From positions 62,001 through 126,000 of the forward strand of contig JALMLS010000479.1 in NCBI GenBank assembly GCA_038496445.1: a stretch of 64,000 nucleotides of DNA, in the 5' to 3' direction. The translations under genes and the position numbers were made by a program. Under the pieces are notes generated by a model. The model was not told the origin of the DNA. It searched no databases and was given only the letters and a program-made list of their open reading frames with translations. Each line of letters opens with the position of its first letter. The stretch's first letter is position 1. This stretch comes from Trichosphaerium sp. ATCC 40318 (Eukaryota; Protista; Tubulinea). Shown here piece by piece: positions 42,178-64,000 of the stretch.

Positions 42178-43146
42178 CTAGTACTTTAGTATCTTATGTG
42201 CACCTGTCAATGTCTTAACAACATTGCAATTTGATGTTGCATCGCAACCATGCAAGTGGATAGTATGTACACCAACTAACGCTTTCAATCCTTCATCTGT
42301 TACATCTGTAAATGATAAATCAATTTCATGTACACCAGCCAACACCTTGATACCCTCATCTGTTATTGATATACAACCATACAAGTTGACGGTATGTGCA
42401 CCCGCCAATGCCTTGATTCCATCGTCTGTTATTGACATACAATCATACAGGTTGACAGTATGTGCACCCGCCAATGCCTTGATTCCCTCGTCTGTTATTG
42501 AGCTACAATAACCCAAATTGATGTTGTATACACCTGCCAATGCCTTGATGCCCTCATCTGTTATTGCTTCACAATTTCTCAATAGGATAGTGTGTACACC
42601 AACTAACGCTTTCAGTCCTTCATCTGTTACATTTGTAAGTGATAAATCAATTTTATGTACACCAGCCAACACCTTGATACCCTCATCTGTTATTGACGTA
42701 CAACCAAACAAGTTGACAGTATGTGCACCTGCCAATGCCTTGATTCCCTTATCTGTTATTGCTTCACAATGTCTCAAGTCGATAGTGTGTACACCTTTCA
42801 ATGACTCCAATCCTTTGTCTGATATGTTTTGAAAGACCAGATCGATTGAATGCACACCAGCCAACGCCATAATACCTTTGTCTGCTGTTGCTTCACAAAA
42901 ATACGCTCTAATAAGTGTATTCTGGAGCAATGGACTACCAGAAAGTGTCTGAGCTTCATTTACATTCTTAATACTGATACAACCATATCCAACGTGATTG
43001 TGAACAATTTCTCGCAACAAGTGGCACGTTTGGGCTGAACGAAGCGTATATGTCCCTTGTTTCAGTATATGAACTATTAACTCAGTAGGTAGCGCAATAA
43101 GGTTGAACACGTGCTGATTTGTATTTTCTGTGCCTTTTTCTTCCAT
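42178..43146 (-). CDS. F-box/LRR protein (intronless, about 11 LRRs)
   Basis: FNLIALPTELIVHILKQGTYTLRSAQTCHLLREIV followed by LRRs in a 322-aa ORF. Confidence 0.9.
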   Translation of the reverse strand: MEEKGTENTNQHVFNLIALPTELIVHILKQGTYTLRSAQTCHLLREIVHNHVGYGCISIKNVNEAQTLSGSPLLQNTLIRAYFCEATADKGIMALAGVHSIDLVFQNISDKGLESLKGVHTIDLRHCEAITDKGIKALAGAHTVNLFGCTSITDEGIKVLAGVHKIDLSLTNVTDEGLKALVGVHTILLRNCEAITDEGIKALAGVYNINLGYCSSITDEGIKALAGAHTVNLYDCMSITDDGIKALAGAHTVNLYGCISITDEGIKVLAGVHEIDLSFTDVTDEGLKALVGVHTIHLHGCDATSNCNVVKTLTGAHKILKY

Positions 43147-43934
43147 ATCGCTGCAATAATCTCTTCTCTAACAGTTGTAATAAAAACTACTTAAATTGAA
43201 CAAAGGGAAATCGGCAAAGAGAGTTGAGTTCTCTAAATGTGTTCTTCGTAAAAAGGAACACAATTGACCATAAAAGAAAACTTCACCTGGGAAAATAATA
43301 GCTACTGTTGTTCGTAAGAACAATAGTAATTAATGGCTCAAAGAAAACGAAGCTAATCAGGAAATAAACTGGCTTTTTTCAATCCTTTAGAATCTGGTGT
43401 TGGTGCACATACAACCGGTACTGTTCAAGGTATTTTAATGAAGAAGAAGTAGACGGTATAGAAAATAACAAGACTAAAAAAAATTGTCCTCCTCACACTA
43501 CCAGTTGAAGTATCAGTTCATACTGTTACCCAGATAAGAGCGAAAAACTTAGCAATATATATATTTGACCTTCTAGCTCTCCCTCCAGTAGCGATGATAA
43601 TTTATATGTTTGTTTAGCTACATATGTGAATACATTTGTATGACACACAAACAATAGGTGGTAGAACAGCATTGGTGCTATCATAAAGTAGCATCAGTTT
43701 GTCCCACACTCATTTCATTCTTTCTATGTATTTGTGTTAGTGAAGTTTGAGGTTCTGCATGTCTTGGCTATACATTTCATATCATAGTACATTCCATGTG
43801 CAGTGGTCCTCGTGTTATTGTACACAACCGGGAGTGTATCATTTCACGGGAATACTAAAAACGAAATTCAAGGTTGGTCATACAAGAATGGCAATAAGTA
43901 TCATTATCAAAGCCATTCTTTTTTATTTTGTATT

Positions 43935-45289
43935 TCAATTTCTGTGGTAAACATTAACATTTTCAAGTATTTTAATGCCTTCGTCTGTCACATTCTTACA
44001 TCCATAAAGAGTAAGTTTAAATACACCTTTGAGTGCTTTGACTCCTTCATCTGTGACTGCAGTATCTTCGAGGTTGATAGTATGGACGTTTTTGAGCACT
44101 TTGATACCGTCATCTGTAATGTGTTTACAGTTCATGAGATTGATGGTATGGACGTTTTTGAGAGCTTTTATGCCTTCATCTGTGACTGCAGTATACGCGA
44201 GATCGATAGTATGTACGTTTTTGAGCGCTTTGATACCTTCAGCTGTAAAACCTTCGCAATGACTAAGGTTGATTTCATGTACATCTTTCAGAGCTTTTAG
44301 GCTTTCATCTGTAACTCCAGTTTTACGCAGTACTATAGTATGTACACCCTTTAAATATTTTAGACCTTGATCTGTCACATTATGACAAAAGGAAAGATTG
44401 ATTGTATGAACATCTTTGAGTGCTTTTAGACCTTCATCTGTGACTTGAGTGCCCGTAACATCAATTTTATATGCACCCTTTAATGCTTTAATACCCTCAT
44501 CTGTCACTTTAGTACAACTAGCAATACGAACTTCATGTACACCTTTCAACGCTTTCATACCTTCATCTGAAACATGTTTGCAGTAAAACATATTTATTGT
44601 ATGGACTCCTGAAAGTGCTTTAAGATCACTATCATTGATTGTACTCACAGCCCCATGAGGTGTGATGATCTTGCGGCATCCAAATAGCATTGAATACAAC
44701 GTATTCTGTCTCATACCATACAAACCAACATAAGTATTATCCATAATTCCCTTGTACTCTCTTATCTTCAAGATATCTTGAACATTGTTTAAAAAAATAA
44801 GATCATATCCAACAATATCATGAATGATATCTGCCATCAACTGACATGTTTGAGCAACCTTGAACCTAACTTTTACATACTCAATGATACTTGAAATAAT
44901 CTCTGGAGGAAGATCAAGAATATTTGGTTCTTTGTCAATCACGTGATTATTTGTTCTAAGTTTTTTTGGTAAATAACAAAACGACATGAGGAAACGATAA
45001 ATAACAAAACGTTTTGGAAGACGTACTTTTGTATTTGTTTGTGTTTTGGTGAATTAAGCGTTGCAGGATGCCTTGCGTTTTGTTTGATTGTGTTTACGTC
45101 ATTATCTGCATGTTTAAACAAAATCTGATCCAATTGTTGTACCAGGCTTGTATTTGATGCGTTTAGTACTGTTTCAACCTGTTTTGTGAGTGTTGACTGT
45201 TTATTCGCAGTAAGTTTACTAAACGCTTCTAAATGATGATTGCGATAATACGTCAACACTTGTTCTATCGAAACACCTGCAAAGCTCAT
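43935..45289 (-). CDS. F-box/LRR protein with an extra N-terminal helical exon (one intron); intact member of the inverted pair
   Basis: MSFAGVSIEQV...QIQK|TNNHVIDKEPNILDLPPEIISSII...AQTCQLMADII followed by about 11 LRRs. GT-AG intron at about 44957-45026. Confidence 0.85.
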
Positions 45290-52339: not shown

Positions 52340-52580
52340 CTCATGTAAATTGAGGTTAACTTTTAGATAAAGCACGTAACAGCATGTTGGCTTCCGTCAC
52401 AGCTGAAGCTAACTGGCGCTAGAATATTGTTTGATTTGTTGATAGTCTAGTGAGCCAAGTGCTAGTTGGACATTGAATTTCAGTGCATTGCCTATGTACA
52501 CTTGAGATACAATAATAACACGAATGTTGGGTATCACGTGATGTATCTTTGTTGAAGAAGAGTTCAGTTTTATTGAAGAC

Positions 52581-54272
52581 GTTTTGCAAAAAGGGTTTGC
52601 CTGGCAAATTCAAAAATGAGAATATCTCATTATCTCGGTGTATACAACGAATTACAATGAGCTTTGCAGGTGTTTCGATAGAACAAGTGTTGACGTATTA
52701 TCGCAATCATCATTTAGAAGCGTTTAGTAAACTTACTGCGAATAAGCAGTCAACACTCACAAAACAGGTTGAAACAGTACTAAACGCATCAAATACAAGC
52801 CTGGTACAACAATTGGATCAGATTTTGTTTAAACATGCAGATAATGACGTAAACACAATCAAACAAAACACAAGGCATCCTACAACGCTTAATTCACCAA
52901 AACACAAACAAATACAAAAGTACGTCTTCCAAAACGTTTTGTTATTTATCGTTTCCTCATGTCGTTTTGTTATTTACCAAAAAAAACTTAGAACAAATAA
53001 TCACGTGATTGACAAAGAACCAAATATTCTTGATCTTCCTCCAGAGATTATTTCAAGTATCATTGAGTATGTAAAAGATAGGTTCAAGGTTGCTCAAACA
53101 TGTCAGTTGATGGCAGATATCATTCATGATATTGTTGGATATGACCGTATCTTTTTAAACAATGTTCAAGATATCTTGAAGATAAGAGAGTACAAGGGAA
53201 TTATGGATAATACTTTGGTTGGTTTGTATGGTATGACACAGAATACGTTGTATTCAATGCTATTTGGATGCCGCAAGATCATCACACATCATGGGGCTGT
53301 GAGTACAATCAATGATAGTGATCTTAAAGCACTTTCAGGAGTCCATACAATAAGTATGCTTTACTGCAACATGTTTCAGATGAAGGTATAAAAGCGTTGA
53401 AAGGTGTACACGAAGTTCGTATTGCTGGTTGTCCTAAAGTGACAGATGAGGGCATTAAAGCATTAAAGGGTGCATATAAAATTGATGTTACGGACACTCA
53501 AGTCACAGATGAAGGTTTAAAAGCACTCAAAGGTGTTCATACAATTAATCTTCGCTTTTGTCATAATGTGACAGATCAAGGTATAAAATATTTAAAGGGT
53601 GTACATACTATAGCACTGTGTAAAACTGGAGTTACAGATGAAGGCCTACAAGCTCTGAAAGATGTACATGAAATCGTCCTGTGTAGTTGTGAAGGTTTTA
53701 CAGCTGAAGGTATCAAAGCAATCAAAAACGTACATACTATCCACCTCGCGGATACTGCAGTCACAGATGAAGGTTTAAAAGCGCTCAAAGGTGTTCATAC
53801 AATTAATCTTTCCTTTTGTCATAATGTGACAGATCAAGGTATAAAATATTTAAAGGGTGTACATAATATAGCACTGCGTAACAATGGAGTTACAGATGAA
53901 GGCCTAAAAGCTCTGAAAGATGTACATGAAATCAACCTTAGTCATTGTGAAGGTTTTACAGCTGAAGGTATCAAAGCACTCAAAAACGTACATACTATCG
54001 ACCTCGCAGATACTGCAGTTACAGATGAAGGCATAAAAGCTCTCAAAAACGTCCATACCATCAATCTCATGAACTGTAAACACATTACAGATGACGGTAT
54101 TAAAGCATTAAAAGGTGTTCATACCATTAACCTCAATAACACTTCAGTTACAGATGAAGGAGTCAAAGCACTCAAAGGTGTATTTGAGATTACTCTTTAT
54201 GCATGTAAGAATGTGACAATGTGACAGACGGAAGGCATCAAAGTACTTGAACATGTTAATGTTTACAACTGA
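52581..54272. repeat. Arm of an inverted duplication (partner 43935-45365) bracketing about 7.2 kb
   Basis: Near-identity in reverse complement, including about 75 bp upstream of the ATG and the intron. Confidence 0.9.
52657..54272 (+). pseudogene. F-box/LRR paralog with frameshifts (inverted near-copy of 43935-45289, with 4 extra LRRs)
   Basis: 1-bp loss at about 53368 (tgcaacatg vs tgcaaacatg) and an 8-bp duplication aatgtgac at 54210-54225. The first lesion could be a homopolymer sequencing error. Confidence 0.75.
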
Positions 54273-57941: not shown

Positions 57942-58296
57942 ACACTCCTGGATGTCTATGTGTTTTATTTTTTGATTAGCTGTTTTTGGTCCCGACCGAA
58001 AAATCAGCCTTCGTTGACCGAATTTGTTAAAAAGTTTTCTTCCATCTACGCGTACGCTACAAGTGGAGTTCAAAACGATAAAGGGTTCAACCGAAACGGG
58101 TTTTTTAATCAGTTTCTCATCGGTGAATAGGAAGCCTGCTCAATCTAACCTTGTTTTCGCCGTTATTACCATTTACTGTACGTTTTAAAGTGTCCAATTT
58201 TCTTTGCCTTTTCAAACAACCCAATTAACGAAATTGGTTGCTTTTTGTGTTGCTTGCGTTGTGTGTAGCATACTAATAGCCTGTAGAGTCGTTTGT

Positions 58297-60471
58297 ATGT
58301 CGGTTGAAATGACAGACGTCCCTGAAACTCAGCCTGAATACACAAAGGAAAGCCCAAGCAGATCTGAAGAGCCTATAGGCACTATAGCAGATTTTAATCC
58401 CGAGAGCGCCACCTCAGACTACAAAGAGCCTTCTTCTAACGGTGGCACTTCTCCAAAAGAGGAGCCAGGTGATGCAATGAACGTAGACGAGAAACAAGAA
58501 CAGGAAGCTCAACAAAATGAAACAGACGACAATGACGTGAGTCGTACACCGATTCGACATACAGAAGAAGAAGGAGAAAGAGTTCGCGACGATGGCAGGC
58601 GTGAAAGGCCGCCAAGTAGAGAACGATCAGATAGAGACTCACGCGACACGCGCAGTGCCAGCAGGGACAATGCATCATCTGATAGATACCGCGATGGTGA
58701 AAGAGGAGATCGCGACAACAGAAGCAGAGGAACTACAGATCGTAGAGACTCGGATAGAGATAGACCTAATTTCCGCGATGATCGACGAACTCAGGAACCT
58801 AGTGTTGCTGGCAAAGAAGAAATAGTATCTCTGTATATTGGTAACCTACTATTTGAGACTACAGAGCAAGACTTGAGGGTCCTCTTTAGCAAGCATGGAA
58901 AGGTTTACAGTGTCAAGTTTATTTATCATCCTACTACTGGTAGACCACGTGGTTTTGCTTTTGTAGAGATTGCTGCTAAAGACGCTGATAATGCATTAAA
59001 GAATGTCCATGGACTTAACTTTCAAGGCCGTATCTTAAAAGTAAACAGAGCAAAGTTTAACGGTACAGAAGCTGGTGAAGCAACGATTGCTTCACTTAAT
59101 AGAGAGCCACGAAGGAATTCTTATGCTGGTGGAGAGTATGGTCAACGATCTAGTCACCCTTATGGGGCAAGAAACTATAGCGGAGGAAGGCCTAGGATAG
59201 AGCGTGATAGAGACCGAGAAAGAGAAAAGGAATATCAAAGACGACCTCGAGAACGCTCAGCTGTTAGTAGTAGAGATGACCGGTATAGAGACCACCCTGC
59301 TGATTATAGAGCTCCTCCTTCAAGGTATTCAGATAGATCTAGACCTGGAGAGTACCCTCGCGATCGCCGTTCGGGTGCTACGCCTCCAGAACGAAGGCCA
59401 AGTACGTTTCATTTTTTTTTTTTGAGAATTTTTTTTTATTCGTTGTTTGGTATCACAGGAAGCTCATTTAGTTGTTATAGGTGATTACCGTGAACGTAGT
59501 TACGATAGACAACCTCAACCTAGATATCCTAGCGAGCGTTACCCAGAGTCAAGGTCTGAGCGGTATCCACCTTCCAGTGCTGATAGAGGCTACGCACCTC
59601 AACCGCCCTCAGACTACCGAGGATACGATAGACCTGCGCCTTCTCGCGGTTACTACGAAAGTAGCCGTAGTAGCAAACCTGTAAGTCACTCAAGCAGCTA
59701 TGGGCATGAAGGTTACTATGATAGGGAAAGGTACAAATCTATCAAAAACAAGTTCTATTCAAACAGATTAATGGAGAAAAGCTAAGACTAACCATCTGTT
59801 TGTAGTAGCGGTTATCCTCCTCATTCTACATCACATTCGCATGGAAGCAGTAGCTATAGACCATCAGAGTCTCGTGAACGTGGATATGATGGTGGACGTT
59901 CATATGATCGTAGAGCAAGCAGTTCATCGTCTTCTTATGATAGGCCTCGTGGTTATACCAGTTCTGCTGCACCTCAAAGTCATGGACAGTATAGCACGTC
60001 GTCAAGTTATGGGCATAGTGATTATCAAAGCAGAAGAAGTGGTGATTATGGTAGAGTATCAGGAACCAATGAATCAAGTGGTTATTCTCGTGGTTATGAT
60101 GATCATCGTGATGGCCGTCCTGCTTCTGCTTCATCTTCGTATAGTAGACCTACATACGGTAGTAGGTCAGGGGAATATAGACGTGATGTACCACATGATA
60201 GGAGAGACGTAGAAAGTGGTGGTAAGCAATATTCGAGTAATAAAAATCGTTTTTTTTTGGTTCCTGATTGTGGTCTAACAATGTATGTATAGGCTACAGT
60301 GATCCTGGTCGTGGTGTTAGGACGTCTTCTTATTCAAGTGGGAGACAAGGAAGCAGTTATTCTTCTTCACGGTCTAGTGACCGTGGAGGTGATCGTGGTG
60401 ATCGTGGAGGTGATCGTGGCGATCGTTACAGCAATCAACGTCCTCCTTCTTATTCTCGCGGCGGCTATTGA
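58297..60471 (+). CDS. RRM-domain RNA-binding protein with RD/RE, RS and SY/G low-complexity regions (SR-like)
   Basis: RNP2 LYIGNL and RNP1 RGFAFVEI; three introns; divergently oriented from eIF1. Confidence 0.85.
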
Positions 60472-61533: not shown

Positions 61534-64000
61534 ATGGATACCAAAGCTAAAAGAAAAAAACGCCGTCGCAAGTCAAGAGCCTATATAAAGATGGAGAGAG
61601 GGATAAAGATTGAAACAGCTAATGAAATCATCGAGTTGGCTCGTGAGCAGTATCCAGATATGAAGAAGCTCAGAGGTGGTGTAGTAATAACAGGCACGTG
61701 CAAAAAAAAAAAAAAACTCAGTCAAATAATTAATAACTCTGATACTTAGATTGTAGACGAGATGATAATCCAATAGTGTTCGCCAACCGTACGGCATATT
61801 TTTTATTCAAAAAAACCTTAGACAACTCGAGTTTTTCATAAAATTATATTAATTGACTTGTCGATAGATGATTTCGAGTGTCTCACGCTTCATCCTGTAC
61901 AAGACGTTATTGGGAAGAATTGTAGGATGCTTCAAGGTTCAGGGACATCAAAAGAACATGTTGATAGTATTCGGGCCAGCCTCAGTACTCGGAAGAAGTG
62001 TAAAATAGTGCGGTTCTTTTTTTATATTTTCGATGCGCTTTATTTGGCTAATTATTTTGTTTTTGTTTTTTTTCGGCTTCCTACACGTTTATTTGATTAA
62101 CTAAACACGTGGTGGGAAAGTATTTATTATTATTAATACGTTATTAATAAAGTGGATCTTTGTAGGAAATTTTAAACTACAGACGAAACGGAGTTCCTTT
62201 TTGGAACAGGTTGTCCATTTGGGGCGTATGCGCTGACTTGAAGCATCCAACTGAGATAAGTCACTACTTGGCTTGTATGAAAGATGTCACTATCAAAAGA
62301 CAGTCTGTAACTATACCTAAACAATGGACATGTGAAGAAGTCGCCATGTGGGCTGGTACACGATACTTGAGACAAACGAGAATCCGAAAAAAAAAGCCTT
62401 TAGTTGTCTCTTTTTTTTTTGGTGTTCAGCTATTGTCGTTGACAAACTCTTTCATAGACCGGCATGATTTTCACCACTATTCAAAAAACTTCATAGATCA
62501 AAATATAGATGGCGCTGAGCTTTGCAGAATGGGTAATTGATCAATTAAAAACACTTAATTTTTTTTTTGAACATAGAAAAAAATCAAAAACATCTTGTAT
62601 TTTACCGCCAAGTCTTAAAAAACGTTTTAGGTATTCCTGAGATACGTAAAAAAATAGGAATGGATAAACTCTCAGCAAAGGACTTACATATGAGCTTAAG
62701 GAGGAAAAAGAAACGTGCGGTTAAATTCATTTTTTCAAAAAATCAAAAAAATCAAGTGACAATCTTTTCCCTCATTTCTCTTCTAGGAAAGGCATCATTA
62801 CCTTCTACAATGCAACGTATGTTATTATTTGAGGGTTGAAACGGGTTTTTAAAACAAATTTATGTTTGATCAAATGGAGATTGTCACGTGATTCAAAATT
62901 TTGTTTTAACCCATTTTTAGAGCGTTTCATTGTGAAGGTTGAATACGGAAAGGATGCAACCATGACAATATTATTTGCATTGGATACAAAGGAAGCACTA
63001 CTCAAACGGTTCGTTTTTTTTAATTTTTTTCGGGATCTAAATATAAAAATAAATAAAAATAAAACCTCTTTTTTTATCAAATCGTCTTCTTATTGCCCTA
63101 GGATACGCGCATCATGGCCAAAACAGATAAAAGCGAGACAAGTCGTTTTATTAGCAGTTGGACCTAACAAAGTGCCTATGGCTATAAATACAACGACAGA
63201 TATCAAGGGAGTAGTGTAAGCTTCATTTTCTTTTTTTTTTTTTGTAAACGAAAAATTTTTCGGTTTTTTTTTTGTGTTGATGCTCGTGAACTGTTATCTC
63301 TTTGAAAACCGCTCACGTGATTATTTAGAGATGAAATTAGAGCAGGAAAGGAATATCACTTTGTATTGACTACAAGCATAATGAAACAGGCTCTCGAGTT
63401 AGGGAAGGACTGTAAGATTGCTATAGCGGTTATTAACTCTAAAAACAAAATAACTTTTGTGAACAAAACGCTGTGCAAATTTTCCGGGTACGTCCGTTCA
63501 TCTCCTTAATTTTTTTTTTGCGCAACAATCAATGTGTACCGAAAAATTCGGAAGACACAACTTTTGACAAATAAAATCTCCTTCACTGGCATGTGTGTTA
63601 TAACCACTCACATTGATATTATCTATCTTTAGGTATGATGAATGTGACTTGATAGGCAAGCATTTTAATATTCTCTCCGACTCCACGTTATCAAAAAATA
63701 TGGAAGAATCAAGTGCGTTTCTCCCTTTTTTTTTGAAATCTTCAGAGACTGCAATGTCTGAAAAAACCTGTCTGCTCTGTGTCCTCTTTTTCCTGTTTTT
63801 TATTCGGTATTACAGAAGAAGAAATTGGTCTCAAAACTGCAAGCGGAGATACGTTACCTAATGTTATAGCAACAACGTCATGGATACCAAGAAGAGAAAT
63901 ATATCTTTGGACAGCAACAATGGCCGAAAAGGCTTCCATCCTCCTAGGGACTTTACACCGGCCTCAAAAACTTAAAACAAATAATGGTAGGCATCCCTGG
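61534..64000 (+). CDS. LOV-SAM-PB1-like-PAS protein (putative flavin blue-light sensor); runs off the window, with a possible extra 5' exon near 61121
   Basis: GVVIT|DCRRDDNPIVFAN|.DFECLT..PVQDVIGKNCRMLQG...|EILNYRRNGVPFWN...DVT; PKQWTCEEVAMWA|...YSKNFIDQNIDGAEL (SAM); FIVKVEYG...LLKR|I (PB1-like); IAVINSKNKITFVNKTLCKFSG|YDECDLIGKHFNIL (PAS). Confidence 0.85.

Follow-up and report, generated by a model that had tools for sequence, protein, structure and literature searches.

The LOV gene at the downstream edge of the window (the whole 64,000-nucleotide stretch of Trichosphaerium sp. ATCC 40318 DNA analysed here) is, judged by its sequence, a new divergent paralog in the known amoebozoan family of LOV–SAM–PB1–PAS proteins. 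The predicted product of this gene, C66, is a soluble protein of about 460 residues without an enzyme domain. Its best overall explanation, to which we assign a probability of about 65%, is a divergent light-responsive paralog with altered partner binding.

The borders of the gene were drawn from its reading frame, its splice signals and its resemblance to relatives, which places 12 exons in the window and one beyond it (Table 1). The gene lies on the plus strand and consists of short open stretches between AT-rich introns; the predicted coding sequence of 1380 nt in 13 exons encodes 460 residues. Eleven introns are GT–AG and one is GC–AG, their lengths are 56–158 nt and their phases are all consistent. 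The GC–AG intron is intron 1, and its donor, GCACGT, fits the local GTRCGK-like donor pattern. Donors of the form GT[AG]CG[GT] are found in six of the 12 introns (GTACGG, GTGCGG twice, GTACGT, GTGCGT and, counted as a T-to-C variant, GCACGT), and this form may be the donor consensus of the genome. If the last intron is retained, the frame stops at window-equivalent position 64061, and in either case the gene ends 61–139 nt beyond the window. The original prediction that the gene continues past the window edge thus holds for this short distance, but the extension adds no domain. The kinase or cyclase suspected downstream is absent: no kinase, cyclase or RasGAP was found in the gene, and ten plus-strand open stretches in the next 4 kb had no significant match to any Pfam domain. 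An MG-type first exon was also sought upstream; no upstream ATG opens one, and the nearest in-frame stop lies 27 nt before the ATG.

Table 1. Exons of the C66 gene and the protein features that they encode. Positions are those of the window; P0001 is the best full-length relative.
Exon	Position	Strand	Encoded features
E1	61534-61693	+	Start codon, polybasic stretch, N-terminal helical cap with the family Y-P motif, first LOV strand (VVIT), GC donor; residues 36-53 align to P0001 16-33
E2	61750-61788	+	LOV strand A/B region (DDNPIVFAN); family HMM positions 45-56, E 9e-5
E3	61868-62007	+	LOV helices; GKNCRMLQG 61912-61938, with adduct Cys codon 61921-61923 and Phe-to-Met codon 61927-61929
E4	62166-62355	+	LOV strands G-I (LNYRRNG, FWN), Gln-to-Met codon in strand I 62277-62279, DVT 62283-62291, linker 62292-62324, SAM start (EEVAMWA; Trp 62325-62327)
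E5	62458-62532	+	SAM continued
E6	62631-62714	+	SAM end; E5-E6 align to P0001 164-209
E7	62787-62816	+	Basic, Ser/Thr-containing link of 10 residues from SAM to PB1-like segment
E8	62921-63008	+	PB1-like segment; IVKVEYG 62929-62949, strand-1 Lys 62935-62937
E9	63102-63215	+	PB1-like segment continued; NTTTDIKG where relatives have the acidic OPCA motif
E10	63329-63487	+	Last PB1-like strand (to about 63374), then second PAS start (from about 63405); family HMM 349-383, E 5e-4; P0001 292-341
E11	63633-63712	+	Second PAS, GY..E.DLIGK motif; P0001 343-363, E 4e-5
E12	63816-63986	+	Second PAS C-terminal strands (to about 63916), tail start; P0001 370-423, E 6e-10
E13 (proposed)	contig 126087-126139 (window-equivalent 64087-64139)	+	Last exon, stop TGA

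Similarity searches used single exons or public full-length relatives, never the joined spliced protein. Taken one by one, the exons are collinear with residues 16–423 of the 452-residue relative P0001, with the exception of the PB1-like exons 8 and 9, and this ordered mapping upholds the predicted domain order LOV–SAM–(PB1-like)–PAS. By these sequence criteria the gene is real and apparently intact. The upstream neighbour, at 58204–60471 on the plus strand, encodes an RRM protein (RRM_1, E 4e-15) followed by a Ser/Gly/Arg/Tyr-rich tail with RGG-like repeats, and the local G+C content of this region is higher, at 0.41–0.44. Elsewhere in the window, at 42178–44987 on the minus strand and at 52549–54224 on the plus strand, lie several F-box-like and LRR_6 repeat genes that have no relation to the LOV gene.

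To place the gene among its relatives, exon 4 was searched against 1.8 billion cluster representatives, which gave 63 matches; many of these are proteins of 390–490 residues in which the whole exon is matched at the same relative position. The best relative, P0001, shows 56% identity. Among 24 full-length relatives, Pfam recognizes PAS_9 in all 24, SAM_1 in 22, a further PAS in 22 and PB1 in 10. The genome itself, of about 70 Mb with about 37% G+C, contains at least nine paralogous LOV loci. P0001 and P0064 are transcript-derived, and the exons of loci C36 and C296 are 100% identical to them; P0014 likewise matches locus C28. This identity of P0001 and P0064 to genome loci means that a transcriptome of the same species is public. 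No transcript-derived C66 protein was found among the 1.8 billion representatives, though those of two paralogs are present, and a search of metagenome contigs with exon 4 returned only LOV loci of 38–46% identity and no C66 transcript. An 8-residue repeat in the basic tail distinguishes the proteins P0001 and P0064. At locus C296 (40800–42762) lies a near-identical copy of the C36 LOV gene (193800–196800), cut off where its 42.8-kb contig ends; this copy stems either from a recent duplication or from a haplotype left uncollapsed.

Wherever the source of a full-length relative can be recognized, it is amoebozoan, except for one record labelled as a green alga, and this distribution agrees with the earlier guess that the DNA comes from a non-photosynthetic protist. 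Annotated or transcript-derived relatives come from Acanthamoeba, Balamuthia, Planoprotostelium (with a RasGAP), Filamoeba, Thecamoeba, Soliformovum and Protostelium. The exceptional record, P0019 (745 aa, MMETSP1310, labelled Chloroparvula japonica), is an amoebozoan-type LOV–RasGAP protein in the transcriptome of a green alga; it could be an amoeba contaminant in the culture or a true occurrence outside Amoebozoa.

The LOV domain with its photoactive Cys was correctly recognized in the original prediction. The exon carrying the adduct Cys in GKNCRMLQG matches phototropin LOV structures with an E value of 2e-6, exon 4 matches solved LOV domains with an E value of 5e-4, and exons 3 and 4 match positions 27–57 and 64–102 of Pfam PAS_9 below the threshold. 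The LOV part of the AlphaFold model of P0001 superposes on phototropin LOV at 1.2–1.6 Å, and Foldseek returned matches to LOV only. Aligned with PDB LOV domains and with its family, C66 retains every one of the polar flavin contacts: the Arg of NCR, the Gln of LQ, the Arg of I-R, the Asn of LNY and the Asn of FWN. Two other positions of the pocket are changed. The active-site Gln in strand I, aligned opposite the Gln of 9vf7 and 8qi8, is replaced by Met, a substitution that the original prediction had not mentioned, and the Phe of NCRFLQ is also replaced by Met. Both residues are retained in all eight other paralogs checked and are invariant among 24–30 relatives; in the 138 LOV cores parsed from retrieved proteins, the Phe is kept in 137 and the Gln in 135. 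Altogether C66 differs at 8 of 31 family-invariant positions, and the six further changes include the equivalent of AsLOV2 F494, which is Leu, and the residue before the Gln, where Ile is replaced by Cys. Such a number of changed positions could indicate relaxed constraint. Among the retrieved proteins, P0002 (735 aa, a JGI metagenome protein) is a multi-LOV protein in which two cores carry Asn or Thr at the active-site Gln.

The effect of the missing Gln can be judged from published work, in which about 350 natural glutamine-less LOV receptors are on record. The LOV–GGDEF–EAL protein of Mesorhizobium loti, with Met140 at the glutamine site, is responsive to blue light (PMC9098866). In AsLOV2, methionines near the flavin generally raise the reduction potential, Q513M among the most, and lower the efficiency of adduct formation; Q513M itself is a soluble holoprotein in which the reduction potential is higher and the adduct forms less efficiently (PMC11151830). 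We do not take the active-site Gln as defining a LOV domain, since it is nearly universal but has been shown to be dispensable. Based on these precedents, a working but retuned sensor is likelier for C66 than a light-blind copy.

The LOV domain is followed by the SAM domain after a short linker, as predicted, and exon 4 spans this junction; from DVT to the SAM Trp the linker comprises 11 residues, not about nine, and contains the P-x-x-W of the family. In the P0001 model, this linker forms only a four-residue helix; thus, there is no J-alpha helix of normal length. Exon 5 alone matches SAM_2 at positions 16–35 with 18.5 bits against a cut-off of 20.5, and the SAM region of P0001 scores 18.6–19.6 bits, also under the cut-off. 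The SAM_1 matches in the 22 relatives reach E 1e-9, and the AlphaFold model of P0001 shows a confident LOV domain and a five-helix-bundle SAM with pLDDT of 84–93, the SAM region itself reaching 85–93. The SAM identity of this domain is probable.

The segment encoded by exons 8 and 9 corresponds, by position and by eye, to residues 220–290 of P0001 and to the equivalent exons of C96 and C12. Pfam PB1 matches neither the exons nor P0001, and a family PB1 HMM from 35 relatives is not significant on either (E 0.5–1.4 on the exons and 0.02 on P0001). Single-sequence hhalign of P0001 212–305 against PB1 yields E 5e-4 with a probability of 31%, and exon-level alignments of the subgroup (C66, C96, C12 and C36) place the exon-8 type on PB1 columns 1–30 (E 9e-4) and the exon-9 type on columns 38–64 (E 0.01), collinear and in register. 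The language-model neighbours of this part of P0001 are all beta-grasp domains (GRHL1_C, PB1, TDP-43_N and CIDE-N) with scores below 0.9. The same position is recognized as Pfam PB1 in the 10 relatives mentioned above, some of them above the curated cut-off, for example P0008 (31.9 bits) and P0026 (27.6 bits). The AlphaFold model of P0001, built with a 24-row alignment, has pLDDT below 50 from residue 216 on, which includes the PB1-like and C-terminal parts, and a 30-row MAFFT alignment misplaced the same region.

Within this segment, the strand-1 Lys of IVKVEY falls on the Lys that is invariant when the PB1 domains of the family are aligned. The acidic OPCA motif is gone from C66, in which the stretch reads NTTTDIKG; C12 keeps DDD-L and several distant relatives keep D-x-D-G...DDD. 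From the weak profile matches, the retained Lys and the lost OPCA motif, the segment is called a diverged, basic-only PB1, which we consider probable. The tentative PB1/ubiquitin-like assignment of the original prediction, with its basic IVKVEYG and absent OPCA motif, is probable in view of the beta-grasp neighbours and the weak profile matches, but Pfam, the family HMM and the P0001 model do not confirm the fold. Type-B PB1 domains, which are basic-only (e.g. Par6 and p67phox), bind OPCA-bearing partners and do not self-polymerize. The C66 segment resembles them in its conserved strand-1 Lys and lack of an OPCA motif, whereas its homology to PB1 is drawn from family position and weak profile matches. 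Without the OPCA half, head-to-tail self-assembly through PB1 would have no acidic partner surface, and self-polymerization of C66 by this route is unlikely.

For the second PAS domain, Pfam gives no match when exons 10–12 are searched singly. These exons align to P0001 292–423, and relatives match PAS or PAS_8 over this region with E values from 1e-7 to 1e-9, in agreement with the PAS of the original prediction. Exon 11 contains no flavin-adduct Cys motif. At the other end, the protein begins with MD and has no Gly2, and 10 of the 12 residues at positions 4–15 are Lys or Arg (61534–61581). In most relatives, MG at the start and a small residue in position 6 fit a myristoylation signal. The polybasic N-terminus of C66 suggests nuclear import or acidic membrane binding.

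These features can be combined in one explanation, the light-responsive paralog with altered partner binding. The LOV domain would bind flavin, and blue light would produce the Cys–flavin adduct. From there the signal would travel through the conserved N-terminal cap and along a linker of very short length into the SAM, PB1-like and PAS modules, and the outcome would be a change in which partners the protein binds. Since the strand-1 Lys is kept and the OPCA half is missing, the PB1-like module could at most supply the basic side in a pairing with an OPCA-bearing PB1, such as that of a canonical paralog, and would not form a self-polymer. With Gln-to-Met combined with Phe-to-Met, Phe-to-Leu and Ile-to-Cys, the sensor is expected to be light-responsive, less sensitive and of higher flavin reduction potential. 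The polybasic N-terminus, which stands in place of the myristoyl anchor of most relatives, would direct the protein to nuclear import or to acidic membranes. A more specific proposal, in which C66 is a desensitized or redox-tuned subunit that pairs with OPCA-bearing paralogs through its PB1-like and SAM domains while its N-terminus guides the complex so formed into the nucleus or onto acidic membranes, is rather improbable as a whole; if true, the paralog set would be a graded, combinatorial blue-light sensing system.

Three other explanations were weighed against the light-responsive paralog. C66 may be a light-blind or decaying copy that has drifted, with a remodelled flavin pocket and no OPCA motif, and is either silent or acting without light as a constitutive scaffold or as a competitor of the canonical paralogs. 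The two Met substitutions at otherwise conserved pocket positions and the six further changes of invariant residues argue for this, as do the lower photoactivation efficiency that methionines near the flavin cause in AsLOV2 and the lack of a C66 protein among the public transcript-derived sequences. However, all 13 exons are open and have good splice sites, C66 retains the adduct Cys together with every polar flavin contact, and a natural receptor with Met at the glutamine site does signal in response to light; we regard a light-blind copy as unlikely, though it is the main rival. Far less probable still is a wrong gene model, with the LOV exons and the SAM, PB1 and PAS exons in separate transcripts. 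The C66 gene model is a prediction from sequence, but exon 4 runs in one open frame from the end of LOV through the linker into SAM, the exon order matches that of the paralog transcripts and most intron positions are common to both.

In the remaining alternative, head-to-tail contacts of SAM and PB1 would let blue light drive homopolymerization or clustering. Polymer-forming members occur in both domain families, and the PB1 of several distant relatives combines the Lys with an OPCA-like acidic motif. On the other hand, many SAM domains are monomeric or form heterodimers only, and C66, without the OPCA half, lacks an acidic partner surface, which makes homopolymerization very unlikely. Describing the two domains as polymerization modules for light-controlled assembly consequently exceeds the data, as the OPCA half is absent and the PB1-like exons have no Pfam match, and the suggested use as an optogenetic clustering part is unsupported for this copy. 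We retain the light-responsive paralog with altered partner binding as the preferred reading. The family is of interest because its LOV domains would have to signal with neither an enzyme nor a DNA-binding part, and with no J-alpha helix of the normal kind. To this, C66 adds a natural eukaryotic flavin pocket that is glutamine-less and lined with methionines, and the canonical paralogs in the same genome provide a ready comparison set for the tuning of LOV sensitivity by Gln and Met.

The combination of domains is not new in itself. The LOV–SAM–PB1 core was published in 2015 for LovA of Physarum polycephalum, described from sequence only as RasGAP–PB1–PAS_9–SAM–PB1 (Schaap et al. 2015, PMC4758236), and annotated relatives are present in public databases, so that the novelty left open in the original prediction does not extend to the architecture. 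Our literature search found no paper joining the LOV domain, the sterile alpha motif and PB1, and no bench test of any LOV–SAM–PB1–PAS family member in the searchable literature. C66 and LovA share an amoebozoan LOV domain (PAS_9 with an NCRFLQ-type Cys motif) followed by SAM and PB1, and both are known only as sequence predictions. In LovA, an N-terminal RasGAP and a first PB1 precede this core and no C-terminal PAS is reported, whereas C66 has neither the RasGAP nor the upstream PB1 and ends in a second PAS. A search for RasGAP gave no match on the contig of C66 and none at the nine LOV loci.

The closest known proteins are the amoebozoan LOV–SAM–PB1–PAS proteins of about 450 residues, which share with C66 the length class, the domain order, the N-terminal cap and the short linker from DVT to Trp. 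They include Acanthamoeba castellanii XP_004341578.1 (annotated as 'SAM domain containing protein'), Balamuthia mandrillaris KAL6078688.1 (annotated as 'Phototropin') and transcripts from Filamoeba, Thecamoeba and Soliformovum. These relatives keep NCRFLQ and the active-site Gln, and most have the MG start, all of which C66 lacks; many also have a Pfam-recognized PB1, several with an OPCA-like motif, and C66 has neither. Phototropin, the source of the best PDB and BLAST matches, has a LOV core about 40–50% identical to that of C66, but where phototropin has two LOV domains C66 has one, and it lacks both a Ser/Thr kinase and a J-alpha helix of normal length. Finally, the glutamine-less LOV protein of Mesorhizobium loti (Dietler et al. 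2022, PMC9098866) resembles C66 in that Met occupies the glutamine site while the rest of the LOV core is complete. The M. loti protein is a bacterial diguanylate cyclase, whereas C66 is eukaryotic, is predicted to carry no enzyme and has a second Met in the NCR-x-LQ motif.
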